Positions 12,601 through 34,922 of a stretch of 64,000 nucleotides of DNA are shown in pieces; the first letter of the stretch is position 1; each line of letters begins with the position of its first letter. The stretch covers positions 186,001 to 250,000 of the IMG/VR virus record IMGVR_UViG_3300023174_000036. One strand, 5' to 3'. The notes under the pieces were generated by a model that ran no database searches, had not been told where the DNA came from, and worked only from the letters and a program-made list of their open reading frames with translations. A program made the position numbers and the translations under genes.

Positions 12601-15600
12601 AATAACTGTCCACCACAGGCAATGTGGTAGTAAATGGCACATCAAAAAACACTTGAGTATAATTTGTGTTAGTAGGCCCACTAACTTTTGAGTTGTAATT
12701 CAATGATGATACACCAGTACCGTCAGCTGAGTTATTCAGTACAGCATTGGGATCTATACTCAAATATCCGTTTTTACTAACACCAAATGTAATGGTACCA
12801 GCAGGTGTGGTATTTGCTATAGCACTTAGCGTAACAGTTGCGGTTATGGTTCCAGTTCCAGTCAATGTGACATTTGAAACAGTTTGTCCACTGCTGAACC
12901 CAGTACCAGTGACAACATCGCCAATGTCAATACTTCCTGCCACGTTGGTTACAATTAATCTAAGTGTTGCATCATCGTAGCTACTGAATGCCCCAGTTGC
13001 AATAAACAACGGCGGAGTATAACCAGTGATACGGTGAACTCGTCCATTCCAGCCAGCCAAAAAGATTCCCTTGTTCAATTGGTCAATTTGGCTTTGCTGA
13101 CTGATTTGCAACACTGCTATTTTATTATCACCAACTTTACTACCCTGTGTTTTATTAGAATCACTAGGATCCAATTGGGTAATATTTGTGCCATCAGTTG
13201 TGAATTTATAATAGTTGAATGAACTATCACTTTGTAGAACAGCAACGTTTGCTGGCAACAATTCGCCTGTTGATTCTGTCAAGTTATAAGCAATAATTCT
13301 ATAAATGTCGCCTAAGTTTTCACTGTACTGAACAGCAGTACTGGGTCTTGTTGGTTTGACGTTGTCGATATCATTAAATTTGATATTTTGATTAACACGA
13401 ATGGTCAGCATTTGTCCATCGTATAATGCGTATGCCAGTCCTGTGGTGATAGTGCTGTTTGTACCAGCGGTACTTAAATTTAATTTAAGTACGTTTTGCC
13501 CGTTGACTGTGATGGTGGTATGCTCAATAGTACTGATAAGGTATCGATAGATAGCACCGCCTGATGCGGAGTGATCAATCTCAATCTCAGCATTGTTTGG
13601 AGGAGTATATGTATAACCAATAATCCAAATTCCCAAGGCCTGAGCAGTGGCAGTTGGAGCCATCTGTGTTGAAACTAATCCCTGTTTGTATACCTGTGCA
13701 GTCTGGACCATGTCGTTGGCCAATTTTACAGAATCGGGCAATTCAGTCACATCGTAACCGCTGGATCTCAAACCGTAATTACCATGTGCATTGGAGCCTG
13801 CTACAGAACGAATTTGTCCGCCGTTGTTGGCCCAATAGTGAGTATGACAATAATATGTAAATGTTGAAACTTGTTCAGTTACGCCGCCGTTGGTGGCCAC
13901 AATCGCATAACCCAAGTCGTTAATCATAGCAAAGTCATTGGCCAACATTGATCGATTACCACCCATCTCAATGTTAATACTAGTGCCGCCGCCAGCATCT
14001 AAGTAACTGATGACTCCGTTTTGTATAGAAGTTTTTGCAGACACAATAGCGCCAGCATCCAGTATGCGTTGGCTATTTTGTCCAGCTGTGGTAGGTGCTG
14101 TTCTACTTGGCACAGTTCCGCCCACTGTTAATTTTAAGTTAGTGCTAGTTACTGTAGCAATTGCACTCATAACAACAATATTAGTTACTGGATCATATGA
14201 TACAATAGTTGTTCCTGAAGGTACACCGGCATTGACTGCGCTGGCAATTGTTGCTCCATTTATCAGTGCAGGATTGTATGACACGTTGGTTATGTTAGCA
14301 GATCCTGATGTAATAGTACCAATTATGGAATTATTAAAATTGCCATCCAATATGTAATCAATGGCCAAACTGGCCAAGTTAGCCAGTATAGTTCCTTGCG
14401 CTGAAGTGGCCACAGGCAAATTAGTAACTTGCGGAGATACATTTCCCACCGTTGGTGTAACAGTGGTATTTACTACCACTGACTTTACCAAAGATATCAG
14501 TTTAGAAATTGCAGGTGAATACAAGTACTCCAACCCTGCAATCTGACTAACACTGTTGCTGTAATAGAATTGTGCAATATCTCTAGTTGCACTGTTGCCG
14601 CCGTATAACAAATCATAAGTCATTGCATCGATCAAATACCCCATGCGCTGACTCAAATCAAATGCACTATATCCCAAGTATCCTCTAGTGGCAAAGTTAC
14701 TTGCAACCCATGCAACTAGCTCGTCTCGAATGAATTGTTTGTTGGCTTTTAATATGTTTACTGCCCGTGACACGTTAGTGGCCACACCAATGGGCTCTGG
14801 GAATGTGGCCGCAGGCAATGCTGCCAAGCCGGAAGATATCATGTCAGTGACAGTGGTCATCTGACTGGTTATGATACCACGAGAAGTACCATTTGAAATG
14901 GCTGCGTTCATCAAGTCTCGAGTTTTGTTTAACCCGGCCAGCAGATATGTCTGTTTAATTCCCACCACAACATTTGCAGTTTGAAGATAATACAATCCTG
15001 TTTTGATGCTTTGGAAATTAGATCCCAGTACTAAGTCATTGGTTAAATCGTCGATGCGCAAGCCAACAGCAGTTGAGAAATTAGCAGTGTTATAAATGTT
15101 AACAGTGTTGAATGGTGTTGACACATCCAATGTCAATACAACTGTGTATGTGGCTGGATCAAAACTAACAACATCGTTAACTTGGAAACGATTACCTTGC
15201 ACATAAAACACACAAGGTGCTTGTGGTGGACGAATGTCTAATCCACTGTTTACGGAACCAGTCACAGTTACAGTGATACCTGCATCGGCCACATTGGTAA
15301 TGGTGCCAAACAATCTACCAGCAAATCCGTCAACAAATTGGCCGCCCCTGAAGGCCTGTCGATTTACCGATTGACTAAAACTTGAACAAACTTGCCCATA
15401 AGGTGATTTGGTTTTAATTTGACCTTCTGGATCCAGCACCATGGCAAAACCACCATGCCCTTGGAATGTTATATTGCTAACTCTTACTGCATCTCCACAC
15501 AAAATAACGTCAATGTCTCGATTATTTTTGGCAGTGCTGGTTATGTCTAATGGATTGGTCAAATAATGTCTGCCGTAATTGTATGTTCCATACAAATGCC

Positions 15601-18600
15601 AATTGCCAGAAGCATAAGTTGTTTTGGCGGCAAACGGATAGATAACTGAGCAGTTCATGGTATTTCCTGCTACAGATTCAACTACAGCTTTACCAGGAGG
15701 AACGTTATTGTCTTGAACAATTTTTCCAATCCAATTGGCCTGGGCCTGCCCAGAACCCAACGTGATAATAATTTTATCTGTGGTACTGCCTAATGTAATG
15801 CTAGCGGCAGTTGCATAATCAACTGATGTATTGGTCAATCCAATTTGTAGTCCGTCGATAACCGCATCTCGATAAAAGAAAATCTTTCTCCAAGGAGATT
15901 GCGAAATTCTATCCAATGGACGAATAATTGTTCGACGGAATTCATCGCCTTTGATACTACAGTTAGCGGGCAAACGTATTGGGTAGTCTTCATAGTATAC
16001 TCCGCTTTCAACAAAAATAGTAATGTTGAGATCGTTAACAGTTTCACCAAATTCCATCTGCTCAGTTGTTTGAAAGAAAGCAGGTTTAGTTAATCTTACT
16101 TGAATAGAATCTGTACTTGCACCACTGCCTGGCAAATATTTCACAATAGTACCTGCCGCACCCGATGTACTACCTAACAATATCTTGGCAGGAATAATGT
16201 GAACGCTGCCTGGAGATCCTTGATCCACATAGCCGTTGCCGCCGTTGCCAAACACCACAGTGTATATGCCAGTGCCAAACGATGCCGCAGGAGCTGAACC
16301 ATATCCGTTAGTAATGATACTAAGGATAGTATTCATATTATTAGTCAGAGTGGTCTTTGCTGGTGCTGATGCAGTCAATGACACATTGAACACTTGAGTA
16401 ACCAATGATTGAAAACGAGTAGCGGAAGTTTGATTTAATACTTGCAATGCCAAATTCTTAGCAAACGTTAAACCATCAACAGTTTCTGTCAATTGTGTTG
16501 TGATAGCTAGTCTAGCACTGGCACTTTTGTAATAACTTTTACCAGCAGTAACAGTTTGATAATTGCCACCTGTTAGTAAATCAATGCGCATACCTTCAAT
16601 AATATAGCCAATATCTCTATAACAAGTTACTTCGTTATAATTAAATCCGCCTTTGTATTTTGCAGTTAAGTAGTTGACCACACTGGCTGATATTGATGCC
16701 TTGTTACCAATAATAGTTGTTCGTGCGGCTTTGTATACACTATCAAATCCATCTAAGGTTGGATACACATACACCAATGATGTGTTGTTTTGAATGATAG
16801 TTGAAATATTTGAAAATCTTTCATTAATGGTTGATTGTGCCGCGCTGCCGCCAACCCATATGATGTTAAATGTTTGACTAATATCACCTTGGAATGTAGG
16901 AGTTACTACTGAATTAGACGACACCAGTGATGCTATATTCTGTAAACGACCAATTGCTTGTGCATAGATGCTACGCTCAGTGCTTGACAGCGTTGATACT
17001 CCGTTGAGCCAGTACTCGTAACCAGTTGGCAAACTGCCTGAATTTCCACCATAGGTAATGTCATATGCAATTGCTTCTATAAAATAATTGAGTCTGCGTT
17101 TAAAAGATGCAACTCCTTCTGAGGGAACAAAAGTAGGAGTTTGTACCAGCTGCCAAACATATGTTTCTTCTACTAAGAAATTGCTGTTGGCCAGTAATGC
17201 TTGTCTAGCATAAGTATAACCTGCATCTAATCCAGATGGACTAACATATGTAGGAACAGATCGAGAACCAATACCCAATGTTAATATATTTTTTATTGTG
17301 TTGAAATTAGCAGTAATAATACCGTTTATAACATCGTTATTAATAACAGAAAAACTTGTGTTAGAATTAATGTATGCAGTGGCCGCTGTTTTTAATGCTG
17401 TTTTCTGAGACACAATATCAGTTCTTGCTGTTAGCAACACAGACGATACAGCACTGATTGTGGGAAGCACAACTGTGGGGGTTGGCACACTGTTTGCATT
17501 GACAATGCTAGCAATAGAAGCTATGTTTGTTGAAATACTGCCTGAAGCGGCTGAGCCGCCCAGCACAGTTTCGTTTGTGTATTGTCTAAAACTGGTTTGA
17601 TACACAGTTGCAGGCTGAGCATTGATAATAATGGCTTGTGCTAAATTATTTACGTAGTTGATAGCCGCAACCCATGATTCTTTTTCTGAACTTAATAATT
17701 GATAAACTCCACCCTGCCAGTATTGCAAACCAGTGTATACACTTTGCTGATTCCCACCATACATCAAATCGTATACTACACTCCAAACTATGTAGTTTAT
17801 ATCGCGTTCACTGCGTGTTTTGCTGTATGCGACTGTTGGAAAGTTTGCTTTTAAGTAAGCAGTAACTTCAGCTTGGATAAACGGTATGTTAGCCAACAAC
17901 AGATCTCTTGCACTAACTAATCCAGATGCAGTTCCTTGTAATCTTGGAAATGATACTGCTGGTATGTCACCTGTAGTCAACAAATTATTAATCAAGTTGA
18001 TATTATTAGTGATGGATGACACAGCGTTTGTACTCAACGCTACTGATGGTATTGCTACTAGAGTAGTTTGTAAATTTAATAATGTAGCTTTGATTTCGTC
18101 AAGGTCTAATCCGGTATTGTATTGACCAAACGCTAGTGCAACTTGTATGCTTTGGAAAGACCCTTGAAAAACTAGATCGTAACATATAGCGTCAATGACT
18201 GCACCAATGTAATTTTGTGCATTAACAGTGCTGTAACTGTAGGCTAAAATTATGTTTTTGGCATAGTCAATACCATCCAACAGCTGAGTTAATTGTTCTG
18301 TAACTAGGTCTATGTAAATAGGATTGAATAATTTAGAAGCCTGCGTTACTGAATTGTAATTTGTGTTTAATACCAAATCATAACCAATGCCATCTACAAT
18401 ATTGCTTATGATTGAGTTATAACGTGCTGAATCAATTGGAATATAATTTACATATTTTTTATTAAGATACGCAATCGTTTCGCTTTGAATAAAACTTTTG
18501 TTAAGACGCAACAATTCACTTGCGTGTTCGTAACCACTAACTCCAGCATTACCGCCACTCAGTGTCACACTTTGTATAGTGCTGAATGTTTGATTAACGC

Positions 18601-19558
18601 CAACTGTGTAAGCAATTTTTTGTCTATAAGGTCCTGGCTCAATGCTTGATAAGTTAATTAAACTTTCAGCGGCCAATGCGGCCTGGCCAACTGTTTTATA
18701 AGCATACTGCCAAAAACGTCCTTCTTTGCCCTCTGGGCTTTTTGTTTGATTGTCGTCACCACTAGTTGTTGATACAAACAAATTGATATTGCTGGAATAA
18801 CTGTTGTTATCCACATAGTATTTGGTGGCCGCTTGCAAATCGTTGGCGCCATTTGGCGTGCCAAAGCCCTCCAATGGAGCTGGATGATCGCTAAGAGTCA
18901 ATGGCCCAGTCATCTTGTCACCGCCGCGATACACTGTATCTTTGCGTTGCATTACCTCAGTAGATACATAATTACCAGTCAAAGTTTTATCGTAATCTGG
19001 GTCATTGATTTGAGGAATAGCTGGTTCATTTCTTGCTCTCAAAGCATCAGTAATATATCCATTTGAAACAGCAACATAATGACTGTCTGCATAGCCTTTG
19101 TTAATGGCCAGTTGTGAAAGAGTAGTTGACACACCCAAGCTGGCGTAGGATGCATTGAACGCATCAACTAAGGCCTGACTGGGATTTGCTAATCGAGCAA
19201 TAGTAAAATTATTTGCATTTAAGTTCAGTCCTAGGCTAGGTGCGCTATCGCCGATCAATCCCGCCGTAGTCGATCTAATAGTTACACTAGCGTTATTAGT
19301 TTTATCAATTGCAATACCAGCACCAGCCACTAGGTCTCTAGCAGTTAATGTTGTCCCGGTAGTGTCAGACATGATTACTTGATTAGCGGAATAACTGGTA
19401 GGAGTATCTCCCAAATCGGTAAATCTAATAGTACCGCCTAGTCCAAAGACTGAGTAAATTTCATTAAAGTTTTCATTTACTTTACGGAAAGATTCGCGAA
19501 TACTGTCGCCCGTACCGTCATTACCTTGTACGCCAATGTCAATTAGTTGTTGTGTCAT
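9686..19558 (-). CDS. Giant baseplate/tail protein with C-terminal intramolecular-chaperone (peptidase G2/IMC-like) domain
   Basis: 3290 aa; N-terminal NDGTGDSIRESFRKVNENF; 'AATKYYVD' fibre motifs; about 7 helical 'D...YDL..GGN' repeats; C-terminal YADLAEYY...ALAGRVPVKV...IGKALE. Confidence 0.8.
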   Translation of the reverse strand: MTQQLIDIGVQGNDGTGDSIRESFRKVNENFNEIYSVFGLGGTIRFTDLGDTPTSYSANQVIMSDTTGTTLTARDLVAGAGIAIDKTNNASVTIRSTTAGLIGDSAPSLGLNLNANNFTIARLANPSQALVDAFNASYASLGVSTTLSQLAINKGYADSHYVAVSNGYITDALRARNEPAIPQINDPDYDKTLTGNYVSTEVMQRKDTVYRGGDKMTGPLTLSDHPAPLEGFGTPNGANDLQAATKYYVDNNSYSSNINLFVSTTSGDDNQTKSPEGKEGRFWQYAYKTVGQAALAAESLINLSSIEPGPYRQKIAYTVGVNQTFSTIQSVTLSGGNAGVSGYEHASELLRLNKSFIQSETIAYLNKKYVNYIPIDSARYNSIISNIVDGIGYDLVLNTNYNSVTQASKLFNPIYIDLVTEQLTQLLDGIDYAKNIILAYSYSTVNAQNYIGAVIDAICYDLVFQGSFQSIQVALAFGQYNTGLDLDEIKATLLNLQTTLVAIPSVALSTNAVSSITNNINLINNLLTTGDIPAVSFPRLQGTASGLVSARDLLLANIPFIQAEVTAYLKANFPTVAYSKTRSERDINYIVWSVVYDLMYGGNQQSVYTGLQYWQGGVYQLLSSEKESWVAAINYVNNLAQAIIINAQPATVYQTSFRQYTNETVLGGSAASGSISTNIASIASIVNANSVPTPTVVLPTISAVSSVLLTARTDIVSQKTALKTAATAYINSNTSFSVINNDVINGIITANFNTIKNILTLGIGSRSVPTYVSPSGLDAGYTYARQALLANSNFLVEETYVWQLVQTPTFVPSEGVASFKRRLNYFIEAIAYDITYGGNSGSLPTGYEYWLNGVSTLSSTERSIYAQAIGRLQNIASLVSSNSVVTPTFQGDISQTFNIIWVGGSAAQSTINERFSNISTIIQNNTSLVYVYPTLDGFDSVYKAARTTIIGNKASISASVVNYLTAKYKGGFNYNEVTCYRDIGYIIEGMRIDLLTGGNYQTVTAGKSYYKSASARLAITTQLTETVDGLTFAKNLALQVLNQTSATRFQSLVTQVFNVSLTASAPAKTTLTNNMNTILSIITNGYGSAPAASFGTGIYTVVFGNGGNGYVDQGSPGSVHIIPAKILLGSTSGAAGTIVKYLPGSGASTDSIQVRLTKPAFFQTTEQMEFGETVNDLNITIFVESGVYYEDYPIRLPANCSIKGDEFRRTIIRPLDRISQSPWRKIFFYRDAVIDGLQIGLTNTSVDYATAASITLGSTTDKIIITLGSGQAQANWIGKIVQDNNVPPGKAVVESVAGNTMNCSVIYPFAAKTTYASGNWHLYGTYNYGRHYLTNPLDITSTAKNNRDIDVILCGDAVRVSNITFQGHGGFAMVLDPEGQIKTKSPYGQVCSSFSQSVNRQAFRGGQFVDGFAGRLFGTITNVADAGITVTVTGSVNSGLDIRPPQAPCVFYVQGNRFQVNDVVSFDPATYTVVLTLDVSTPFNTVNIYNTANFSTAVGLRIDDLTNDLVLGSNFQSIKTGLYYLQTANVVVGIKQTYLLAGLNKTRDLMNAAISNGTSRGIITSQMTTVTDMISSGLAALPAATFPEPIGVATNVSRAVNILKANKQFIRDELVAWVASNFATRGYLGYSAFDLSQRMGYLIDAMTYDLLYGGNSATRDIAQFYYSNSVSQIAGLEYLYSPAISKLISLVKSVVVNTTVTPTVGNVSPQVTNLPVATSAQGTILANLASLAIDYILDGNFNNSIIGTITSGSANITNVSYNPALINGATIASAVNAGVPSGTTIVSYDPVTNIVVMSAIATVTSTNLKLTVGGTVPSRTAPTTAGQNSQRILDAGAIVSAKTSIQNGVISYLDAGGGTSINIEMGGNRSMLANDFAMINDLGYAIVATNGGVTEQVSTFTYYCHTHYWANNGGQIRSVAGSNAHGNYGLRSSGYDVTELPDSVKLANDMVQTAQVYKQGLVSTQMAPTATAQALGIWIIGYTYTPPNNAEIEIDHSASGGAIYRYLISTIEHTTITVNGQNVLKLNLSTAGTNSTITTGLAYALYDGQMLTIRVNQNIKFNDIDNVKPTRPSTAVQYSENLGDIYRIIAYNLTESTGELLPANVAVLQSDSSFNYYKFTTDGTNITQLDPSDSNKTQGSKVGDNKIAVLQISQQSQIDQLNKGIFLAGWNGRVHRITGYTPPLFIATGAFSSYDDATLRLIVTNVAGSIDIGDVVTGTGFSSGQTVSNVTLTGTGTITATVTLSAIANTTPAGTITFGVSKNGYLSIDPNAVLNNSADGTGVSSLNYNSKVSGPTNTNYTQVFFDVPFTTTLPVVDSYLTIANQANASYNGTYQVLSVISKTQISIASTSALSVGMVISSSATGTYVPSTCVIQSIDSSTLFTVSPAAWIPSGSSIVSTLVAYLSGLTISNPGTNYTVVPQIEISGGGALVQAIATCVVANGSIQSVTIVSPGYGYSSAPNVTVSYGDAVLTPVLSESPQINSTVTAGNITTRLGLIYASDPGAFTVGASRTVSGFGSIAGSGPYTVNLTINSGAVPTAGTWYQVTGNTNTLYNGFYKVDTTGSTTTNIRLIYNFNPGTWSTSTPTTVILSVTSGTSTQLGISKPFSTGTAVTLRAGYPINSSAQVTTRISTCRVTGHDLLDIGTGSYTTTNWPTVIYGNPAKVYQQSQEIKEEGVGRVFYVTTDQNGIFRVGRFFTVDQGTGSVTFSASIALSNLDGLGFKRGVVVSEFSTDPSMTNNASDTVPVQSAIRSYIDKRLGIDHGGSPVALASLIGSGYVPLNGTLAMKSTFNMGNFNIVNLGTPGTDYEAANKLYVDGRVLAYNAINKLIDTTVVGPSTNNILVYDQTVSKWKNKTITGDVNLDFNTSTGVLSAVIQPSSIVNTQISPSAGILQSKLSMTIAGVSGSAPSGNAASIQSSNGVSSFNSNEFTLFNGWASLRTSSSASTGVTLSKIQQISNGTILGNRSGSTASPVELTPAQVVGDAGGLTNSLFNASGAVTVAFDGVNVANNVYAVTGITTTRAVNSLVKTDSSGGIDVNYIKIGGYKALGITSLTNTFTTPGGFDYMTVLGTTSSNSNMTVFGTLDVSNGTLKTNLLTTDKSGAPSGPNAGSASINGWWAIQASSQIDFSLGTLKSLSLTTGGDTIPGVMTGRWRLDGASRLQATYADLAEYYEGDQDYEEGTVLVFGGDKEVTVTTQINDTRSAGVVSANPAYVMNGEQTGIKVCIALAGRVPVKVIGRVKKGDMLTTSATAGYAVKALNPTLGAVIGKALEDKDYGEAGMIQVAVGRV

Positions 19559-19564
19559 TTGTCT

Positions 19565-19888
19565 TTAAACTCCGAAACTTGAACCGCACCCGCAAGTTGT
19601 GGTTGCGTTGGGGTTCTTTATGCTGAATGAACTGCCCTGTAAATCTTCTTTATAATCTATTTCTGCACCTGATAGATACTGCATACTCATTGCATCCACA
19701 AGTACACGAAACTCGTCCAGTGGAACTTCAAAATCATCTTCGTTTGCCACATCATCAAAAGTAAACCCGTAGCTAAAACCGCTACAGCCACCGCCTTGCA
19801 CAAATGTGCGTAATGCTAGTTTGGGATTGTTCTCTTCCGAGAGTAAATCTTTAATTTTTGTCTTTGCTGACTGAGAAATAGTGATCAT
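19565..19888 (-). CDS. erpA: A-type Fe-S cluster carrier (IscA/ErpA/HesB family)
   Basis: GGGCSGF and CGCGSSF motifs; start moved to MITISQ (AAGGA SD). Confidence 0.9.
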
Positions 19889-19893
19889 ATTTG

Positions 19894-19919
19894 TCCTTGA
19901 TTGAATATTTATCAAAGGA
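19894..19919 (-). promoter_or_regulatory. Hairpin sequestering the erpA SD with a TAAATA late promoter in the loop
   Basis: Minus strand TCCTTTGAT-AAATATTCA-ATCAAGGA; 8 bp with one bulge; TAAATA at 19906-19911. Confidence 0.5.
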
Positions 19920-19946
19920 TTTTATAACCTTAATGTAAATACAGTT

Positions 19947-20234
19947 ATGTATATTGGAACTGAATTTAGAATAAACCAGCACATACGCACCAGTAAGAAG
20001 GGTAAGACACATTCTTATAGCCGTAAAGTAACAGTGGTTGTGTTCAAGTGCGATTCGTGTCACGGAGTATTCAACCGAGAAAAAGGATCCATGGATCCCA
20101 AACGATTAAACAACAATTTTTATCATGTGTGCGGGGATTGTGACCCTAAGAAATTTGCACAGATGAAAGGGGTAGAAGCACGTAAAGTGTGGGACATGCC
20201 TGTAAGCAGTCTTAAGACACTCGACCAATTCTAG
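19947..20234 (+). CDS. Small Zn-ribbon-like protein
   Basis: CDSC...CGDC pairs; TAAATA 5 nt upstream of the ATG. Confidence 0.65.
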   Translation: MYIGTEFRINQHIRTSKKGKTHSYSRKVTVVVFKCDSCHGVFNREKGSMDPKRLNNNFYHVCGDCDPKKFAQMKGVEARKVWDMPVSSLKTLDQF

Positions 20235-20772
20235 AACTAATCAAGTTCCAGTTGATAATTTTCCACTGGTTATTAAGATAACCCTTCTTGTCAGCTTGAT
20301 AATCAAGAGCCCACGCATGTTCCCACCAGTCGATCAATAGTATAATATCCATCTTAATTTCGTGATTCTTAATGGTTTTAATACTGCCATCTCTAGCCAA
20401 GTAAGCCCAGCCACTGCCCTGTATTTTCATTGCTGTTTTAGAAAATTCGTCCTTGAATCTATCAAAACTTTTGAAATGTTTGTTGATAAAGTTTTCAGCA
20501 ATGTGCTCAGGTTTGTTAGAGTTGGTAGGAGATTGGAATTGTCTAAAATATATGTCGTGTAAAAAAGCACCAGCTTCGTTGAAATCCGGGTCGCCTTCGC
20601 CCTTGTTGTATCGATCCACATAGCCTTTATAAAGCTGGCCATAATGATAATCTATAGTTTTTTTGCTCAAACTTCGACCCAGCCCACCAGCGGCGTAGGG
20701 CAATGGTGCTTGTTCTAAGGTAGTGGGAGTTTTACCTTCATTTAGGGTCACATATTTGATAAAATTATACAT
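20212..20772 (-). CDS. sod: Fe/Mn superoxide dismutase
   Basis: LPY...YH...Y, FLH, GSGW and DWWEHA motifs; all four metal ligands are present. Confidence 0.9.
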   Translation of the reverse strand: MYNFIKYVTLNEGKTPTTLEQAPLPYAAGGLGRSLSKKTIDYHYGQLYKGYVDRYNKGEGDPDFNEAGAFLHDIYFRQFQSPTNSNKPEHIAENFINKHFKSFDRFKDEFSKTAMKIQGSGWAYLARDGSIKTIKNHEIKMDIILLIDWWEHAWALDYQADKKGYLNNQWKIINWNLISSRIGRVS

Positions 20773-20798
20773 GATTGTATTTATTGTTAAATAACTCA

Positions 20799-20899
20799 GT
20801 CAAGTGATCAATAGGGTATCCAAGGATCCGCAAGTTAAGAATTTTCCCTATTTCTTCTTGGCACAGCTAATGTAGCTCAACGGCGAATTGGCGCTTGAC
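20799..20899 (+). ncRNA. Candidate structured leader/ncRNA
   Basis: Terminal stem GTCAAGTG/CGCTTGAC, inner AATAGGG/CCCTATT, AGCT/AGCT hairpin; begins 5 nt after TAAATA (20788-20793). Confidence 0.4.
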
Positions 20900-20916
20900 A
20901 CCTTAAAGGAAAAGAT

Positions 20917-21147
20917 ATGTTACATCACATTAAAAAATTATTTGGTATTAAACCAAAGGCAGAAGTTCAACCAGAAGCTCCTTATAAAGTTGAAGTTGCA
21001 ACTGTAGCAGAACCAACACCAGTTGCGGTTCAAGCTTCTGAAGCTATGGTTGAATCAGTTGCTCCAGCTAAGAAAAAACCTGCGGCTAAAAAAGCACCAG
21101 CGGCTAAAAAGCCACGTGCTCCAAAAGCACCTAAAGTAGCAAAATAA
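20917..21147 (+). CDS. Lys/Ala/Pro-rich histone H1-like small protein
   Basis: PAKKKPAAKKAPAAKKPRAPK tail; AAGGA SD. Confidence 0.7.
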   Translation: MLHHIKKLFGIKPKAEVQPEAPYKVEVATVAEPTPVAVQASEAMVESVAPAKKKPAAKKAPAAKKPRAPKAPKVAK

Positions 21148-21173
21148 TATAAGGGCATTACGCCCTTATATTA
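21145..21173. terminator. Bidirectional hairpin terminator between convergent genes
   Basis: Perfect 12-bp inverted repeat TAATATAAGGGC-ATTAC-GCCCTTATATTA. Confidence 0.75.
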
Positions 21174-21377
21174 AAACTTGCTTAATTGCTGAGAGTAATT
21201 GGCCATATCCTCTTGAATTTTAGCCCGACGTTGATCATTCAATTTGGGATTTTCTTCCAGCTCTTCTCTAAGGGTTTCCAACCTGTGTATCAGTTGTTCT
21301 CGAGATAGTTTTGGGTTTGATGAACGAGCATTTTGACGTTGTGAGTTGTGTTGACTTTTTTTAGGATTGTAACCCAT
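21171..21377 (-). CDS. Hypothetical helical protein
   Basis: 68-aa ORF filling the gap downstream of uvsE. Confidence 0.55.
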   Translation of the reverse strand: MGYNPKKSQHNSQRQNARSSNPKLSREQLIHRLETLREELEENPKLNDQRRAKIQEDMANYSQQLSKF

Positions 21378-21395
21378 TTGTTTGTTTCATTTTTC

Positions 21396-22418
21396 CTATA
21401 CTAATTTGAGTTCTACGGCTCTGTTGTAAACTTGTTCACTGCTCAAATTTTTGCCTTTGCTTTCGCACATGATATCAAAGTTTTCCCAGAAACTGAGTGC
21501 CCAGTCTGTTACGGGCTGGTTCCAGTACCAGTCACTGTGTGCTCGCATTTTTTGTTTCTTGTAGCCTGCGGCTATCAGATCAGAATGATTGGGTAATACA
21601 TCGATAGGATGATCAACCAGCACATCTTCTCTTGATACACTGTAATGGCACACCGGCCTCACTCCACGCCATGAATCGATAATACGTTTGACTCTGTCGT
21701 CTGTGGGCTGAATGTATTCACCAGTGCGTATCCAATGGTGGTGCAGATCCAGCACAAGAGCACAGCTATCCACCAATTCAATACTGCTGTCCACACCCCA
21801 GCAATTTTCATCATTCTCAATGGTGATGCAGTTACGAGCTTCGGGACTCAACTTCTTTATTGTTTCTTTGATACCTTCAGGACCACGTTTGCCTGAGATA
21901 TGCACATTTATCTTCATATCCTGGAATGTTTTACCAAAGCCCATCCAGCGAGCCATATCCGCATGATATTCAAATTCTTCAATTGAACGTTCCACAATGC
22001 CTGGATTTTCCGAAGCAAGTACACAGAACTGTCCGGGATGGAAACTGATACGCACATCATGCTTACGAGCGGCTTCACCTACTGGAGCAAAGATGCGTTC
22101 ACAGTGGCGTTGTTGATCTGGATGTTGCCACCACACAATCCAATCTTTTTCAGTATAACCACTCAGCATTTCGGATCCAATACGCATCATTCTGCGTTCG
22201 GCAGGTAGAGTAGCAACCTTCTCAATCATTTTGATTGCGGCTGATGTGTTGTGATTCATCAGGTCATATTGACGCTGTTCAGCTTCTAACGGATGCTCAC
22301 GCAACCATCGCATGGTGGTACTGCGACCATTCATCACTCTGTTGGCGGCATTGACCTTCATGCCTCTCACTTCGCTAGCATCGTCTAACCATTTGCAAGC
22401 ATAGCCTATACGTTTCAT
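21396..22418 (-). CDS. uvsE: UV damage endonuclease UvsE/UVDE
   Basis: IGYAC, R.SFHPGQF.VL.S, IENDE and DLHHHW motifs; start moved to MKRIGY. Confidence 0.92.
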   Translation of the reverse strand: MKRIGYACKWLDDASEVRGMKVNAANRVMNGRSTTMRWLREHPLEAEQRQYDLMNHNTSAAIKMIEKVATLPAERRMMRIGSEMLSGYTEKDWIVWWQHPDQQRHCERIFAPVGEAARKHDVRISFHPGQFCVLASENPGIVERSIEEFEYHADMARWMGFGKTFQDMKINVHISGKRGPEGIKETIKKLSPEARNCITIENDENCWGVDSSIELVDSCALVLDLHHHWIRTGEYIQPTDDRVKRIIDSWRGVRPVCHYSVSREDVLVDHPIDVLPNHSDLIAAGYKKQKMRAHSDWYWNQPVTDWALSFWENFDIMCESKGKNLSSEQVYNRAVELKLV

Positions 22419-22426
22419 GTGTGCCT

Positions 22427-22636
22427 TTACCAGTGTCGTATGACACCTAAGATTATAAAAATGTTTGTAAGTACATATGATAACACAATCAAAGTACGAA
22501 TGCAAGCAATACGGTCCGATTCCTCGTCCGTACTGCCTGATTTTTCACCTAATGCTTTGGCCCAGAGTCGCCAAATATCTTTAGCCTTGGTAGATAGCCG
22601 AATTGGCCCCATGTTCTGCACACTCCACTTTGACAC
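22427..22636 (-). CDS. Small membrane protein (WRLWAKALG family seen in T4-like phages); start uncertain
   Basis: WRLWAKALGEK...IRT...TM...IRHW. Confidence 0.55.
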   Translation of the reverse strand: MSKWSVQNMGPIRLSTKAKDIWRLWAKALGEKSGSTDEESDRIACIRTLIVLSYVLTNIFIILGVIRHW

Positions 22637-23030
22637 AATAACAACGATTATTAGTTTTTTCTCTAATCAATTTATCAGCAAAATTGAAAGCATGTTCTGC
22701 AAACTTTTCTGCACCCACACCATCAAAGATTCGTATCTCTGCTAGATCCAATGCTTCCAGTTCTTGGAATTTGGCCAAGTGTGGATCATTTTTATCCAAA
22801 GCCAACTTGTGATCAAAGTGATCTTCCAGCCATGCTTTCAGCGATTTGAGTCCGCCAAAGTCCACTGCCCAGTTTTTGTTGTCTAATTCATCACAGCCAA
22901 AAGTGAATGTGAACGCTAGACTGTAACCATGTAGTAAATGACAATGCGAATGATCTGCATTTGGTTGTCTAAACACAGCACTGAGTCCAATGTTGTGTCC
23001 GTAATGTTTTGTTGAGTAATACTTTGCCAT
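22581..23030 (-). CDS. queD: 6-carboxy-5,6,7,8-tetrahydropterin synthase (QueD/PTPS family)
   Basis: C.LLHGY, VDFG.LK, FDHK motifs and C-terminal E...NSA; start at MAKYY with AGGA SD. Confidence 0.88.
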   Translation of the reverse strand: MAKYYSTKHYGHNIGLSAVFRQPNADHSHCHLLHGYSLAFTFTFGCDELDNKNWAVDFGGLKSLKAWLEDHFDHKLALDKNDPHLAKFQELEALDLAEIRIFDGVGAEKFAEHAFNFADKLIREKTNNRCYCVKVECAEHGANSAIYQG

Positions 23031-23052
23031 TGTTGTTTTTCCTATTAACAAT

Positions 23053-23096
23053 GACACGCAGAGTTTATATTGCGGGATGAGCGTCTAAGTCCGCAT
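23053..23096 (-). promoter_or_regulatory. Candidate preQ1-I-like riboswitch/pseudoknot in the queD 5' UTR
   Basis: UGCGG-ACUUAGACGCUCAUC-CCGCA-AUAUAAACUCUGCGUGUC: 5-bp P1, loop ending CAUC, A-rich tail, possible P2 UAGA/UCUG or ACGC/GCGU. Confidence 0.5.
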
Positions 23097-23102
23097 AATA
23101 TA

Positions 23103-23130
23103 ATTATACGCTTTTACAGCGTATGGTCAA
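23103..23130 (-). promoter_or_regulatory. sigma70-like promoter for queD-uvsE
   Basis: TTGACC-N16-TATAAT. Confidence 0.7.
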
Positions 23131-23132
23131 GT

Positions 23133-24344
23133 TTATTGGCGACCAATTGCACCAAATGGTAACCATTGTCCAGGCGTACCAGACGAAATGCACACCCAAC
23201 CAACGTAACCGCTTTCAACTGGATTCTCATTCCATTGGATATCACCTTTGTTGAACTGTCCTTCGGTTGGAACTTGACTACCTTTGATAAATTTCTTATT
23301 ATTCAAAGTAACTGCACCATCAACGGTTAAATCTGAAGTGGTGGCAATTGGACCAAATATCTTAACTGGTCTGCGACCAAAGTTTGGATTACCAACAATG
23401 ATTTCGTCATTACTGCCATAAAATATATCTTCTTCATTGATGGAGATTTTATGGTGTTTGTTACTGTTAGTGCCTTGTGCAGTTACAGATAAACTTTCAA
23501 TACCGTTGTTAATAAACACAGATTTAAAACTTGCGTTGCTTAGTCTAGCATTTAAATTGCCTTGTATTTCAGCATCACCAGTAACGGTCAACCACTGTAG
23601 TGGTCCCACAGTGATTAGGTTACTGTTAACCACACTTGAACCCAAATCAGTCGCACTCAATACAGATCTACCATTTATATGATATGCTTGCTGGTCATCC
23701 AGATCCAAGGATGTACTGGCCCATAATCTATCAGGACCATCACGCATGATCAACTGACGAGTAATACGATCTGCAGACCAAATTAAACCCAAACCGTATA
23801 TGCTGCCGTCTCTATTGGCTTTGAATTCTAACGGACTGTTACGTTCAACACGAGTATCTGAAACAAAATTGTCAACGTGCAAAGACCCATGCACTCGCAA
23901 TACACCAGATTTTCCAGCTTCATTTCCAATAACTACTTCACCGTTGCTTTTTACAAGTATGCGTGGAATATTGTCAGAAATGATAGCAACATCGCTAGTG
24001 GAATAAGTTCCAAAATGTGCAATACCAGGCTCAGGGCTTCCAATAGCAATTTCAACGTCGTTGTCTAAAATACTGATGCTGGCGTTGGCATCTAAAGTGC
24101 CAAGACCCAATCGGCCGTTTGAGCTGTTAAAATGTGCAAATTCTGCCAGTGTGGTAGTGCCTGATACTTCTAAACTTTTAAGAGTACCAATTTCTCTTAG
24201 ATTACTTTTAGTAACAGTAATACCAAGCTCAGTGCTTGATAACACAGGAGTATTATCAATTTTGTAAGCGTGATCAGCAGACAGATCTAGGTTACTATCT
24301 GCCCATAATCTATCGTTTCGTACGGTTAATTGTTGTGTTGTCAT
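23133..24344 (-). CDS. Virion structural / tail-spike-like protein
   Basis: Fibre-like beta repeats (SNLREIGTLKSLEV / SNLITVGPLQWLTV); C-terminal KGDI.WN..P...GWVC...GTPGQW..FG. Confidence 0.65.
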   Translation of the reverse strand: MTTQQLTVRNDRLWADSNLDLSADHAYKIDNTPVLSSTELGITVTKSNLREIGTLKSLEVSGTTTLAEFAHFNSSNGRLGLGTLDANASISILDNDVEIAIGSPEPGIAHFGTYSTSDVAIISDNIPRILVKSNGEVVIGNEAGKSGVLRVHGSLHVDNFVSDTRVERNSPLEFKANRDGSIYGLGLIWSADRITRQLIMRDGPDRLWASTSLDLDDQQAYHINGRSVLSATDLGSSVVNSNLITVGPLQWLTVTGDAEIQGNLNARLSNASFKSVFINNGIESLSVTAQGTNSNKHHKISINEEDIFYGSNDEIIVGNPNFGRRPVKIFGPIATTSDLTVDGAVTLNNKKFIKGSQVPTEGQFNKGDIQWNENPVESGYVGWVCISSGTPGQWLPFGAIGRQ

Positions 24345-24398: not shown

Positions 24399-25595
24399 TT
24401 ATGCTACCTTAAGCAAGATGGTATCTTCGTTAATACGGCCGTTTAATTTGGTGTCCGTAGCGTTAATGTCATCTAAGAATTTACGCAACTGCACCTTGCC
24501 CGCGGCCTTGAACTCTTTGAGTTTTTCTTCGGGCTTACGTATAGTCTTTTGAATACTGGTAAACTCGTTAAAGTTGGTAATTGTAGTACCTTTGACGTTT
24601 AATGTGTTAAACTCTGCGGCCACATACTTGCCCAGTTTACGAGTTTTGGTATTAAAAATCCACAGTTCGCCAGCACCGATAATGTCAGTGGGATTAATCG
24701 AAACAAGTTTCAAAGGCTCATTTGTCTTCATAAACTTGAGTTTAGCAACTAACTTTTCTTTTGGAACTGCTTTAGTTTTACGTGGAGCACGATTAACTTT
24801 GGCTTCTTGTGCCAGCATATCGCAAGCACTCATAATCTCTTGATAAAAAGCAATCAAGTTCTTAATTTGCTTACGGCTACGGTGGCTATAGCCCTCTTTG
24901 AGCTGTTCATCTGCCTTACCGCTAGCCAACTCTTCAAGCTCAGCTAAATCCCTACTGTAGAGGGTTTTAATGATTCTAGCATGTGCCGCTTTGACTTCCT
25001 TGCCTTTCAGCAAGTTAAGCATTTTAAATGCTTTAGGATCAAAGTTTTCTGGATCTGCGTGGAAACCTTCGATGGCGTCTTCAATTTCTTCAGTCATACG
25101 CAAGGCAGATTCTTTAACACGCTCTTGAATAGTGGGTTGCGCCACCGTGGGCTTTACTTCGACAACTGCTTCTTCGTCTACGTCGTCTTTACCCTGTGCA
25201 ACGATTTGCACAATTTCGTTACGCAACCAAACTGTAGTGTCTCGGCCCTTGTTAAAATCTTCACGAACAGCAGGCATACCTCGAAGCAAGCAACTGGCAA
25301 TGGCACCCATTGTGACATTACAACGATTATCTTTGGTTCGCTTGAAAGCCGCAATGTCTTCTTTGGTACAACCAATAGTAGTCATCCATTTGATAACAGC
25401 AGGCTTCAAATCCTTGCCCGAAAATTCCAAACGATAGTAGCTCATAGCACTGTGAAAATGGCGCATGAATTGATCAGCGTCCATAGTTTCACAACCTTCC
25501 CAAGTTGGGCTGTGATCCTTAACCGCTTTGGTGCGATGTGCAATCACTTGCTTTTTGGTTACACGAGTTTTTGTTGCTGGTGCTTTAGTAGCCAT
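24399..25595 (-). CDS. Basic hypothetical early protein
   Basis: 398 aa, Lys-rich; GGAG SD at MATKAP; own sigma70 promoter. Confidence 0.75.
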   Translation of the reverse strand: MATKAPATKTRVTKKQVIAHRTKAVKDHSPTWEGCETMDADQFMRHFHSAMSYYRLEFSGKDLKPAVIKWMTTIGCTKEDIAAFKRTKDNRCNVTMGAIASCLLRGMPAVREDFNKGRDTTVWLRNEIVQIVAQGKDDVDEEAVVEVKPTVAQPTIQERVKESALRMTEEIEDAIEGFHADPENFDPKAFKMLNLLKGKEVKAAHARIIKTLYSRDLAELEELASGKADEQLKEGYSHRSRKQIKNLIAFYQEIMSACDMLAQEAKVNRAPRKTKAVPKEKLVAKLKFMKTNEPLKLVSINPTDIIGAGELWIFNTKTRKLGKYVAAEFNTLNVKGTTITNFNEFTSIQKTIRKPEEKLKEFKAAGKVQLRKFLDDINATDTKLNGRINEDTILLKVA

Positions 25596-25625
25596 TTCTG
25601 CTCCTGTTTGTTTAACAATATACAT

Positions 25626-25654
25626 ATTATACTGCCAAACTGCGGTGTTGTCAA
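25626..25654 (-). promoter_or_regulatory. Consensus sigma70 promoter
   Basis: TTGACA-N17-TATAAT. Confidence 0.85.
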
Positions 25655-31568: not shown

Positions 31569-33617
31569 TTACACTTCGCTAGATTTTGACAGTGGAATGT
31601 CGGCACCACAAGTACATGATCTCTGTGTGCAAACTATTTCTTTTTTAAAATTAACCCAATTGATTTTTTCCCACTCGGCCATGGTTCCCCAAGACCTACC
31701 ACCTACTTGACAGTTTGCCTTGCGTATGTTGCCAGTCTGATGTATGAACATACTTTCTTTACCAATAGAACAGTTCCAGTTGTAAAATCTAGTTTGTCCT
31801 TTATTGATCAACGATTGATAACTATCCGCTCCTTTTACAACAGTGCCGTCTTTGTATGTTATCATTGGGCTCATATTTAGATTTTTAACAAAATAATTAG
31901 GAGAAGCTGTTCTTGGTTCTATAGTTTTAAAGTTTTCAAAAAATTTCAGCTGTTCTGGACTGTAGTTTATTACACAAAGTTTGTTGGCCTGCTGACCATA
32001 TTGTTCCTCAATCATAACAATGTCAATTCTCACATTGGTCTGTGTTTTTACTTTTTCAATGAATTCTATACAGTTGTCCCAATATAACGGATCCATCATA
32101 ACCCTCACCGTTGTTTTAGTAAACCTGCTGGAAACTTTTAATTTTTCAATAAATGCATCACTGGTTTGATTTTTGAATTCAAATGCAGGATGAAAGCTAC
32201 ATGATGCTTGTAACAAATATTTGAAATTTTCTTCAATAAATCGTTCAGTGCGAGATAAATTGGTAGTCAGCACAGTGTGATGACCGCGATCATATATCTC
32301 TTTAATCAACTGCGTGAAAAACGGACTCATGGTTGGTTCGCCGCCTGATATTGAAAAAATAATTTTTCTATCGTTTTCTGATAGCATGTCTATGGAGTGA
32401 GATATAAAAGGCTCCACTTGTTCCCAGCTGAGAGGATAATTTTTACCGTCATGCAATTCGCTTGGACAATATCTGCACGAGTAGTTACACACATCATTAA
32501 GGATCCAGGTCACTAATGAAAATTCGTTATTTTCAATTTTGACAATCTCCGTACCTTGTATGGGCGGCAACTGTTTCCAATAGGGTTGTCTTTTTTCCTT
32601 GTCCTCATATTCCTCGTAGGCTTGACTGGACGATATGATAGAATAATCAAATATTTCAGTAAATCTTGACAAATCAACTTTTAAAGAGTATTGACGATCT
32701 GACCATAACTCTTCTTTTTGTCTGCCATCCAAGGTTCCAATGGCATAGTATCCTTCTCTATTTTTAAAAAATTCGCCGTAACTAAAACCAAATTGCTCTG
32801 GATTTAATTTCTTCCAGCGATGGTGGTATAGTTTAAATCTTTCGGGTGTATTATCCGACGGAAACATGTGTATCAATATTTCGTTTGACCATGTGGTTTG
32901 TGGGGATATTAAATTTTTCTTTAAACTTTCTAAATCTTCATCGTGTATGATATGTTTGAGACTTTTGCCCAGAGTATTGTAACCCAGGCAAAAATCCCCA
33001 AAGTCTAGAAATGGCTTTAGGCAAAATAAATCTTCATCTTCCAATTCATAATTTGTTCGAGGATTATAACTTGCCACACAAACAAATTCTGACGCTTCTG
33101 TCCAGTCTTCTTTTAATGCAACTTCTGCTGAATGTATTAGGTCGTTGAGCAGTACAAATGCATTGTGCATGTCTTCGTTGAATGTTATGCCTGGCCAACG
33201 CTTTGCATAAGCATGAGTTTCATCGTACAGTTGATAAGCAGTATCCCACCATTTTTCTTTTAATTTTTCCTGATTTCGAACACCGTATATTGCATAGTTG
33301 TCGTGTAATTCGTTCAGTATATCTTGTGTTAATATAGTTATGGGATATCTTAATTTTAAATCATAAAAAGAATTTATTCTCTTGATAATGGTATTGAATT
33401 TTTTTATAAAATCTTCATCAATTTTAAAATTTTTATGATGTACTTTTCTTTCTCGAAAGCTGTAATCACTTTTTTTAAGTTTTTTTAATTCAGCTACCCA
33501 TTTGTGTGCAAGTGGTACATCAAACAAATTAAAATAAAGATCGTAGTTTTCCAAAGTCTTGGGATCAATCAAAGTGACTCGGACTGCGTCATTTATAAAT
33601 CGATTTGCATTACTCAT
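31569..33617 (-). CDS. Fusion of an uncharacterised domain and a radical SAM enzyme (subtype B)
   Basis: C-terminal half W.L..VCNYSCRYC, SGGEPT, C...C.C..D; N-terminal half resembles ORF 52291-53181. Confidence 0.85.
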   Translation of the reverse strand: MSNANRFINDAVRVTLIDPKTLENYDLYFNLFDVPLAHKWVAELKKLKKSDYSFRERKVHHKNFKIDEDFIKKFNTIIKRINSFYDLKLRYPITILTQDILNELHDNYAIYGVRNQEKLKEKWWDTAYQLYDETHAYAKRWPGITFNEDMHNAFVLLNDLIHSAEVALKEDWTEASEFVCVASYNPRTNYELEDEDLFCLKPFLDFGDFCLGYNTLGKSLKHIIHDEDLESLKKNLISPQTTWSNEILIHMFPSDNTPERFKLYHHRWKKLNPEQFGFSYGEFFKNREGYYAIGTLDGRQKEELWSDRQYSLKVDLSRFTEIFDYSIISSSQAYEEYEDKEKRQPYWKQLPPIQGTEIVKIENNEFSLVTWILNDVCNYSCRYCPSELHDGKNYPLSWEQVEPFISHSIDMLSENDRKIIFSISGGEPTMSPFFTQLIKEIYDRGHHTVLTTNLSRTERFIEENFKYLLQASCSFHPAFEFKNQTSDAFIEKLKVSSRFTKTTVRVMMDPLYWDNCIEFIEKVKTQTNVRIDIVMIEEQYGQQANKLCVINYSPEQLKFFENFKTIEPRTASPNYFVKNLNMSPMITYKDGTVVKGADSYQSLINKGQTRFYNWNCSIGKESMFIHQTGNIRKANCQVGGRSWGTMAEWEKINWVNFKKEIVCTQRSCTCGADIPLSKSSEV

Positions 33618-34851
33618 TTGATAAATTTTCCACAGCTTGTTTTACTAGTCTCATTTCAGGAATTACATCTAGCAATTTTTCATCTCTAACAGCATCAACT
33701 TGTTCAGTTACCTTTAAGAATTTTTTGGCCGCTGACAAATCAAAGGGCTGTTTTAGCTCATGAATAGTATGTGTAAACAAATGATCAATAGTGGTATCGT
33801 ATTTTTTGTTGTGTTCCACAATGAACTTTTCTAATTTTTTAATGGTTGCTTGTCTAAAATCATCTGGCAATATATGCATGTGATAATGAGTTGGATCAAA
33901 CAAAAGATTAATAAAGAAATTTTGAAATTTATGTTTCTTACGCACAACACCAATTTCCACTAGTCTGTTGATAATTTCGGGCAATCGATTAACATTCCAT
34001 GCACCAATAGTTAATCCTGGTCTAACAACAATGTTGTCCAGTTTGACCATCTCTTTCAAGTTGTCTTCTACCTTGCTCCACACAGTGCCTGACCTTATGA
34101 TCTCAGCACGTTCGTCGATTTCGTCAATACTGGGCCATACTTCAACTTTCCAATCGTCCCACAATCTCCAATAGTCCAGCACATTCTTTTTGCCGTACAT
34201 CAACGTACTTGCATTGGTATTGTAACTGACTTTGACATCGAATCTCTTATGCTCCACTAGCATATCTAAGATTTGCCAATGCTCGGGCATCAACAGTGGC
34301 TCACCGCCCGCAAAGTAAATTTTTTGTACATGTTCTACTTGATCTTTTAAGAAATCAAAATTGGTAGATGTGCCAACTTGGTCAATACTCCAAACTTTTT
34401 CTTGATCAGAATAACCAAGTTTTTTAGCATCAGGAACCCATGCGCTACTATATCGTGGGCCGCAACTGCGACATTTCATATTGCACAAATTGCTAAAACG
34501 AAAGTCCCAGTATTTTAACTCCATAGTTTTACATGTGCCATCAGGTTCTGTAATTTCTGGAATAATCTTAATTACATCAGGAAAATCTTTATTGTGATAA
34601 AATCTTCCACTTTCTCCGGTGACTTTTTCTCGGTCAAAACATTTGTTGCAAATTTTAGGCTCTACTCCGTTGATCATATCTTTGCGGAGATCTTTCATAT
34701 TTTGACTATTCCAAACCTGATCAATAGTTTGCGTATTTAGGTCGCCCGCAAAATAATTATGCACCGAAGTTAAACAACACGGCACAACTTGTCCACTAGG
34801 TTCGAATGCCAAATGCATCCACGGCACTGCACATAGGGTATCTTTACTCAT
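33610..34851 (-). CDS. Radical SAM enzyme with N-terminal twitch-like Cys domain (subtype A)
   Basis: CAVPWMH...CC...CNKC, then CNMKCRSC and FAGGEP; TAAATA at 34883-34888 supports the MSKDTL start. Confidence 0.9.
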   Translation of the reverse strand: MSKDTLCAVPWMHLAFEPSGQVVPCCLTSVHNYFAGDLNTQTIDQVWNSQNMKDLRKDMINGVEPKICNKCFDREKVTGESGRFYHNKDFPDVIKIIPEITEPDGTCKTMELKYWDFRFSNLCNMKCRSCGPRYSSAWVPDAKKLGYSDQEKVWSIDQVGTSTNFDFLKDQVEHVQKIYFAGGEPLLMPEHWQILDMLVEHKRFDVKVSYNTNASTLMYGKKNVLDYWRLWDDWKVEVWPSIDEIDERAEIIRSGTVWSKVEDNLKEMVKLDNIVVRPGLTIGAWNVNRLPEIINRLVEIGVVRKKHKFQNFFINLLFDPTHYHMHILPDDFRQATIKKLEKFIVEHNKKYDTTIDHLFTHTIHELKQPFDLSAAKKFLKVTEQVDAVRDEKLLDVIPEMRLVKQAVENLSNE

Positions 34852-34922
34852 TTTATTTTTTCTCTTATGTATAAATCGTTTGTATTTACGATAATACTTT
34901 TCTAAAACCGGCCGTATTGAAA

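Follow-up and report, generated by a model that had tools for sequence, protein, structure and literature searches.

A covarying pseudoknot upstream of queD in uncultured phages resembles an undescribed riboswitch class and probably acts as an ON switch

The short RNA leader in front of the queD gene of a giant phage is a real, strongly conserved pseudoknot that recurs in hundreds of uncultured phages. The element of about 45 nt sits directly upstream of queD-like genes in at least 325 uncultured-phage loci (215 distinct sequences), although the QueD proteins in these loci have diverged to as little as 33% identity. It looks like an undescribed riboswitch class, which we infer from sequence and predicted folding probably turns queD translation on rather than off, and it is not a standard preQ1 riboswitch. 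We are highly confident that it is a functional cis-acting RNA structure, whereas we assign a probability of about 0.6 to the full model, in which a small molecule is sensed and translation is switched ON through competition between the pseudoknot and a hairpin that sequesters the ribosome-binding site.

We analysed a 64,000-nucleotide stretch (hereafter the window) of a 356-kb IMG/VR contig (IMGVR_UViG_3300023174_000036), in which the element lies on the minus strand (Table 1). A promoter matching the consensus at 11 of 12 positions, with a 16-nt spacer, lies just after the stop codon of a tail-fibre-like ORF. Seven nucleotides after its -10 hexamer, the RNA reads UGCGG, ACUUAGACGCUCAUC, CCGCA and AUAUAAACUCUGCGUGUC, followed by the Shine-Dalgarno (SD) sequence and the ATG. 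The sequence-only reading that prompted this analysis had described this arrangement, and its sequence and coordinates proved right. The promoter spacer also holds a hairpin, scored as a terminator-like site, that is probably the terminator of the upstream tail-fibre-like gene and overlaps the promoter. Its stem changes in a compensatory way in two related loci, to TACACT/AGTGTA in L005 and ATACAG/CTGTAT in L014 (L numbers denote related loci). The downstream ORF encodes a 149-aa protein of the 6-carboxytetrahydropterin/6-pyruvoyl-tetrahydropterin synthase (PTPS/QueD) family, with matches to Pfam PF01242 (3e-14) and phrog_2389 'QueD-like' (2e-41). The NCBIfam model TIGR03367 QueD scored 1e-8, below its cutoff, and no PDB relative was found by sequence. 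A mechanical ORF list starts this gene at GTG 23057, but the SD, the ATG and the N-termini of homologues (MAKYYSTK) all place the start at 23030.

Table 1. Positions of the features in and around the queD leader, numbered along the window.
Feature	Positions	Strand	Sequence	Remarks
Stop codon of the tail-fibre-like ORF	23133-23135	-		
-35 hexamer of the queD promoter	23125-23130	-	TTGACC	
Spacer hairpin	23106-23124	-	ATACGCT-GTAAA-AGCGTAT	Probable terminator of the upstream gene
-10 hexamer	23103-23108	-	TATAAT	Predicted transcription start about 7 nt downstream, at the first base of P1 (about 23095-23096)
Covariance-model hit	23043-23098	-		63.4 bits
P1 5' strand	23091-23095	-	UGCGG	Pairs with 23071-23075
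L1	23086-23090	-	ACUUA	Variable first nt, invariant C, near-invariant U, then a spacer of variable length
P2 5' strand (pseudoknot)	23081-23085	-	GACGC	Pairs with 23053-23057
Mismatch U and 5' side of the P2 extension	23078-23080	-	U, then CA	U·C mismatch with C23058; C23079 pairs with G23059, A23078 with U23060
L2	23076-23077	-	UC	Invariant C immediately 5' of the P1 3' strand; candidate ligand-pairing base
P1 3' strand	23071-23075	-	CCGCA	
L3	23061-23070	-	AUAUAAACUC	A-rich 7-mer with invariant A at positions 3, 5 and 7, then Y and invariant UC (CUC in the window)
3' side of the P2 extension and mismatch C	23058-23060	-	UG, then C	
P2 3' strand	23053-23057	-	GUGUC	Also the 5' end of the strand that pairs with the start-codon region
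Sequestor hairpin, 5' strand	23047-23056	-	UGUCAUUGUU	Overlaps four of the five P2 3' nucleotides
Shine-Dalgarno sequence	23040-23043	-	AGGA	In the loop of the sequestor hairpin
Sequestor hairpin, 3' strand	23025-23034	-	AACAAUGGCA	Contains the AUG (23028-23030)
queD-like gene	22581-23030	-		149 aa

To determine whether the element is more than a chance occurrence, we searched viral contigs for relatives of the QueD protein and obtained 80 loci encoding 87-100% identical proteins, almost all of which carry the same element just upstream of queD with obvious compensatory changes. A covariance model built from 57 distinct copies finds exactly one copy in the window, with the next best hit at 12 bits, and one copy just upstream of queD in 78 of the 80 loci. 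We then scanned viral contigs with two degenerate DNA patterns that specified only GG-N-CU, the L2, P1' and L3 consensus, and the tail, and retrieved at least 120 hits with each. Of these 240 hits, 239 have at least 4 of 5 P1 pairs, although the P1 5' strand was left unspecified apart from its two 3' G's, and 231 are followed directly by a QueD-like ORF. In at least two of the exceptions, one short extra ORF precedes queD (a cupin in L195, an uncharacterised 243-aa protein in L208). Since the sequences are related and were partly retrieved with patterns that fix the L2, L3 and tail consensus, conservation of those blocks is over-stated, whereas the paired positions and the R:Y pair described below were left free. 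The QueD proteins following these hits are 33-93% identical to that of the window (median 42%), and the association is therefore old and specific. 

The 5-bp P1 helix is strongly supported by covariation: 99.6% of cells are paired, four of the five pairs change on both sides, and the closing G-C pair is invariant. The middle pair is C-G in 102, A-U in 75 and U-A in 38 of the 215 distinct sequences. None of 500 shuffles reaches the observed covariation score, and sliding the 3' partners drops pairing from 85.6% to 36-51%. For the pseudoknot helix P2, a 'longest helix' measure was too permissive to discriminate, and the MAFFT alignment slips register in some groups, so that its figure of 69.6% paired understates P2. 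We therefore scored a fixed register anchored on the conserved flanks. Among 63 distinct strand combinations, cognate strands form 3.86 of 5 pairs against 2.38 for non-cognate strands (permutation p≤5e-5). P2 continues across a conserved U·C mismatch into two more pairs, CA/UG changing to CG/CG. The R:Y pair of this extension is A-U in 135 and G-C in 80 of the 215 distinct sequences, with no exception; all 120 hits with the tail YUCUGC have A and all 120 with YUCCGC have G, although the search patterns allowed either base. In a mutual-information scan the top-ranked pairs are mainly these predicted pairs. G·U pairs are frequent in the sense orientation while the reverse (A·C) is rare, which fits a structure in the sense RNA rather than a duplex-DNA signal. 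The supported register differs from both of those proposed in the sequence-only reading (UAGA/UCUG or ACGC/GCGU), neither of which is supported by covariation.

The element has its own invariant core (NCU, UCR and YUCYGC), and its unpaired positions are almost invariant. L1 position 1 is A in 103, U in 63 and C in 49 of the 215 distinct sequences, position 2 is C in 215/215 and position 3 is U in 213/215. L2 ends in C in 215/215, and the nucleotide before it is U in 116, A in 64 and C in 35. L3 reads NNANANA followed by YUC, and its positions 4 and 6 track the identity of the middle P1 pair, which could reflect a base triple or shared ancestry.

We next asked how the pseudoknot could be coupled to expression. 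In the window, the minimum-free-energy fold consists of P1 plus a 10-bp hairpin, UGUCAUUGUU with AACAAUGGCA, that holds the AUG in its stem and the SD in its loop; the 51-nt leader tail folds at -10.9 kcal/mol (z = -2.9). Across relatives the leaders follow four different designs with the same logic: group A pairs the P2 3' strand with AUGGCA, group B forms CCUAUG...CAUAGG over the SD, group C pairs GUCAU with AUGGC over about 40 nt, and the YUCCGC group forms ACUCC...GGAGU. In 156 of 167 distinct leaders the P2 3' strand pairs with the start codon (116) or the SD (40). The duplex energy is -6.5 kcal/mol, against -3.4 for shuffled strands (Wilcoxon p = 5e-36) and -4.9 for non-cognate strands. 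No terminator follows the element. P2 and the sequestor are therefore predicted to be mutually exclusive, and stabilising P2 should expose the ribosome-binding site. This ON direction rests on predicted alternative pairings, and ON control is unusual for a biosynthetic gene. It argues against the simple end-product feedback, and hence the OFF switch, implied by the sequence-only reading.

Two promoter arrangements recur in these leaders. In 45 of 178 related contexts, a promoter matching at least 10/12 positions has its -10 ending 6-9 nt before P1, against 22 of 591 (3.7%) random 80-nt windows, so the transcript starts at the aptamer. In 57 of the 178 contexts, a strong σ70-type promoter is built into the element: L3 together with the platform forms TTTACA-N17-TATAAT, with the last base of P1' plus L3 providing the -35 and the sequestor loop an extended -10. 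An example is the group-B leader of locus L012 (TTGATA-N17-TGcTATAAT, 11/12). These loci almost never have the upstream promoter as well (1 of 178), and random 80-nt windows reach the same promoter score in 3.7% of cases. Transcripts from the internal promoter would lack the aptamer, so at least there the element cannot be the only control on queD. Yet the aptamer still covaries in these loci, and one relative, L320, keeps the hairpin after losing the -10. The simplest idea for this otherwise unexplained arrangement is two transcript classes with different regulation.

In about 180 distinct loci the flanking genes vary (tail fibre, HIT, glycosyltransferases, KdsA-like, epimerase, UvdE and others). 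GTP cyclohydrolase I (FolE) lies 1-6 kb upstream on the same strand in 54 loci, a QueE-like radical-SAM gene lies downstream in 49, and 24 loci have both. Homologues in cultured phages are annotated QueD and sit beside QueC, QueE or FolE. The regulated enzyme is therefore the first committed step of 7-deazaguanine synthesis, although the 64-kb window itself holds no folE, queE or queC (tblastn returned neither folE nor queE). The closest cultured-phage QueD genes, those of Synechococcus phage BUCT-ZZ01 and Pseudanabaena phage Pan1, abut or overlap the upstream gene and have no such leader.

No Rfam 15 family matches the element. We found no relevant hit at the gathering threshold anywhere in the window, and none for the window copy or two other variants at E≤10, including preQ1-I, -II and -III. 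Searching GenBank phages by blastn with the window region and the motif returned only queD-coding or chance hits. A pattern scan of 185,579 bacterial and archaeal species genomes gave 26 hits, of which only 7 are real by the covariance model; all 7 lie on contigs of 4-32 kb in metagenome bins and are followed by the phage-type queD, whereas the Idiomarina hits lie in coding sequence at 19-22 bits. Literature searches for a queD- or phage-associated motif of this kind found no description of it.

Taken together, these data partly support the sequence-only interpretation of a variant preQ1/preQ0-type riboswitch: a conserved, covarying H-type pseudoknot does stand at the 5' end of a phage queD transcript in a 7-deazaguanine context, and a riboswitch is the most economical reading, but the class membership, the P2 register and probably the direction of control were wrong. 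Our analysis establishes the structure by covariation, its exclusive link to queD (within the counts given above), and the complementarity of the P2 3' strand, with the bases after it, to the start codon or SD; that a small ligand binds, that binding is selective, and that it changes expression are inferences. In the model we favour, a ligand would bind in the pyrimidine-rich junction between P1 and P2 and stabilise P2, pulling the anti-RBS strand out of the sequestering hairpin and thereby switching QueD translation ON. The ligand is most likely a guanine-like heterocycle that could pair with the invariant L2 cytosine, with a 7-deazaguanine, guanine itself, or a pterin such as the QueD substrate or product as candidates. 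A bolder version, which we hold only tentatively as somewhat less likely than not, is a class that exists only in phages and senses a metabolite not yet known to have a riboswitch, either a pterin such as dihydroneopterin triphosphate or CPH4 or a 7-deazaguanine intermediate such as CDG or preQ0. It would act as an ON switch that times or gates phage 7-deazaguanine synthesis, with a tunable bypass through the promoter embedded in the aptamer.

Of the alternatives, a divergent class-I preQ1 riboswitch that represses queD as end-product feedback survives best but is unlikely. It would bind preQ1 or preQ0 in the same pocket, formed by the L2 cytosine, an L3 adenine and the G-C pair at the top of P1, and it draws on the shared topology and gene context; the features against it are given in the comparison below. 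A protein-binding translational operator, recognised by QueD itself or another phage protein without a small molecule, is slightly less likely. Phage mRNAs use leader pseudoknots for autogenous control, invariant single-stranded bases could equally be protein contacts, and the element is tied to one protein family only. However, the element stays nearly unchanged while QueD diverges and the surrounding genes differ, it is very small with a pyrimidine-rich junction typical of small-molecule aptamers, and T-fold QueD/PTPS enzymes are not known to bind RNA, nor did family scans of this protein link it to RNA binding. A constitutive element without a sensing role, such as a 5' stabiliser against RNases, a translational tuner or an RNA thermometer, is improbable. 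The sequestor hairpin alone could act as a thermometer or damp translation, and the internal promoter bypasses the aptamer in a third of the loci, but about 20 invariant unpaired positions and the conserved overlap between P2 and the sequestor in four designs are hard to explain without a switching function. A frameshift or readthrough stimulator was rejected because many copies start at the transcription start site. A DNA-level promoter architecture or protein operator, suggested by the embedded promoter, is very unlikely given covariation with variable loop lengths of 8-15 nt where a dimeric DNA-binding protein would need fixed spacing, G·U pairs on the sense strand only, and upstream promoters that place the whole element in the transcript.

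Riboswitches in phages are rare, and those reported so far are copies of bacterial classes, whereas this would be a widespread class that seems to belong to phages themselves. It would control the committed step of the pathway that makes 7-deazaguanine bases, which many phages use to protect their DNA from host restriction. The element is tiny, has clean covariation including a mini-helix without exceptions, and offers a clear testable switch, so it is ready for ligand screening and structure work. If the ligand is new, or if the switch is truly ON, it would extend both riboswitch chemistry and our picture of how phages schedule auxiliary metabolism. The embedded promoter is an unusual arrangement worth study in its own right.

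Compared with the published features of preQ1-I riboswitches (Rfam RF00522, types I-III; PMC11625349, PMC10622847), the element shares a small H-type pseudoknot with a 5-bp P1 topped by a G-C pair, the order P1, L1, P2, L2, P1', A-rich L3 and P2', and an association with queuosine/7-deazaguanine genes. It also has the conserved 'specificity' cytosine immediately 5' of the P1 3' strand, usually as UC or AC as in types I-III (PMC11625349). It differs in that no covariance model matches, and in that L1 is at least 4 nt and starts N-C-U instead of with the conserved U or UU that contacts the ligand. P2 is 3-7 bp plus the 2-bp extension across the mismatch. Between the invariant L3 adenines and the variable P2 strand lie a conserved YUC, then Y-G and a mismatched C. 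The SD and AUG lie outside the aptamer, and the P2 3' strand is an anti-RBS strand rather than the SD, giving a predicted ON logic rather than the OFF logic of preQ1-I, in which ligand binding hides the SD or forms a terminator. The element was found only on phage-like contigs and before queD, never before queT/yhhQ-type transporters or queCDEF operons. We therefore do not file it as a preQ1-I member, although it may work in a similar way, with a planar guanine-like ligand stacked between P1 and P2 and paired to the L2 cytosine. Other pseudoknot riboswitches (SAM-II/SAM-V, preQ1-II/-III, guanidine-III, fluoride) likewise have a compact pseudoknot aptamer in a 5' leader that acts on translation initiation, but none of their Rfam models matches at E≤10, the conserved cores differ, and most of these bury the SD when the ligand binds. 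The glutamine riboswitch of pelagiphage-like and cyanophage genomes (PMC9004378) is also a cis-regulatory aptamer carried by an aquatic phage next to auxiliary metabolic genes, yet it is a copy of a bacterial class, whereas this element gave no convincing hit in bacterial and archaeal genomes apart from the short metagenome-bin contigs with the phage-type queD. The leader of T4 gene 32 mRNA is likewise an H-type pseudoknot at the 5' end of a phage mRNA that controls translation, but that pseudoknot is a nucleation site for its own protein, gp32; here there is no evidence of protein binding, and the junction is far more conserved.

In examining the surroundings of the queD leader, we observed a hairpin, ATACGCT-GTAAA-AGCGTAT, inside the spacer of the queD promoter and directly after the stop codon of the upstream tail-fibre-like ORF (coordinates of this and the other features are collected in the table below). 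The stem changes in a compensatory way in relatives, reading TACACT/AGTGTA in locus L005 and ATACAG/CTGTAT in locus L014, and the hairpin is probably a terminator that overlaps the promoter. A different arrangement, absent from the window, is found in locus L012 and in 56 other related contexts, where a σ70-type promoter is embedded in the RNA element itself: its -35 is formed by the P1' end plus L3, and its extended -10 is the loop of the SD-sequestering hairpin. This embedded promoter is almost mutually exclusive with a promoter upstream of P1 (57 against 45 contexts), since both are present in only 1 context. Elsewhere in the window, a perfect TTGACA-N17-TATAAT promoter lies directly upstream of an ORF of the phrog_11903 family, which carries no functional annotation. 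This phage evidently relies on host-type promoters in this region.

Table. Positions of features near the queD leader, elsewhere in the window and in the related locus L012.
Feature	Sequence	Position	Strand
Hairpin in the spacer of the queD promoter, probable terminator	window	23106-23124	-
σ70-type promoter embedded in the RNA element	L012	1822-1850	
Run of auxiliary genes downstream of queD	window	19565-22505	-
UvdE-type UV endonuclease	window	21396-22505	-
Fe/Mn superoxide dismutase	window	20212-20772	-
HesB/IscA-like Fe-S assembly protein	window	19565-19915	-
Two giant ORFs (3290 aa and 1515 aa) and the 403-aa ORF upstream of queD	window	5139-19558 and 23133-24344	-
Four radical-SAM proteins	window	31569-34932 (-), 50395-51687 (+), 55133-56443 (+)	- and +
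Radical-SAM protein with the weak QueE-like hit	window	31569-33617	-
ATP-dependent DNA ligase	window	37465-38790	
Perfect TTGACA-N17-TATAAT promoter	window	25626-25654	-
ORF downstream of that promoter (phrog_11903)	window	24399-25625	

The genes around queD include a run of auxiliary functions downstream of it on the same strand, comprising a UvdE-type UV endonuclease, an Fe/Mn superoxide dismutase and a HesB/IscA-like Fe-S assembly protein. Two giant ORFs of 3290 aa and 1515 aa are also present. The 1515-aa ORF and the 403-aa ORF upstream of queD share a C-terminal region that matches the same virion structural protein family (phrog_6002), whereas only the 403-aa ORF also gave weak tail-fibre-family hits. 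Four radical-SAM proteins lie within 25 kb, one of which has a weak QueE-like hit at 1e-6, and the window additionally encodes an ATP-dependent DNA ligase.

In a few of the related loci, a gene other than queD directly follows the element: a cupin in L195, a CmoB-like methyltransferase in L202, and uncharacterised ORFs in L208 and L227. queD was confirmed as the second gene in the two of these loci that were examined for it, L195 and L208. Such insertions may hint at further chemistry on the pathway product. The motif together with the phage-type queD is also carried on contigs of 4-32 kb in metagenome bins labelled Bacteroidetes, Crocinitomicaceae, Chitinophagales, Nitrospira and Rickettsiales (loci L083, L095, L096, L098, L100, L101 and L103), which are probably phage DNA binned with bacterial genomes.

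Within the element, L3 positions 4 and 6 track the middle P1 pair across the 215 distinct aptamer sequences (loci L001-L346): C-G goes with C or U at L3 position 4, and A-U or U-A goes with A, in 212 of 215 sequences. This correlation could reflect a minor-groove base triple, although shared ancestry could produce it as well. A short variant of the element, found in loci L037, L055, L069, L071 and L076, has a 4-bp P1 (AAGG/CCUU) and an L3 of only 4 nt (CUAA) before UUCUGC. This variant scores 19-27 bits with the covariance model and shows that L3 length is not absolutely fixed.
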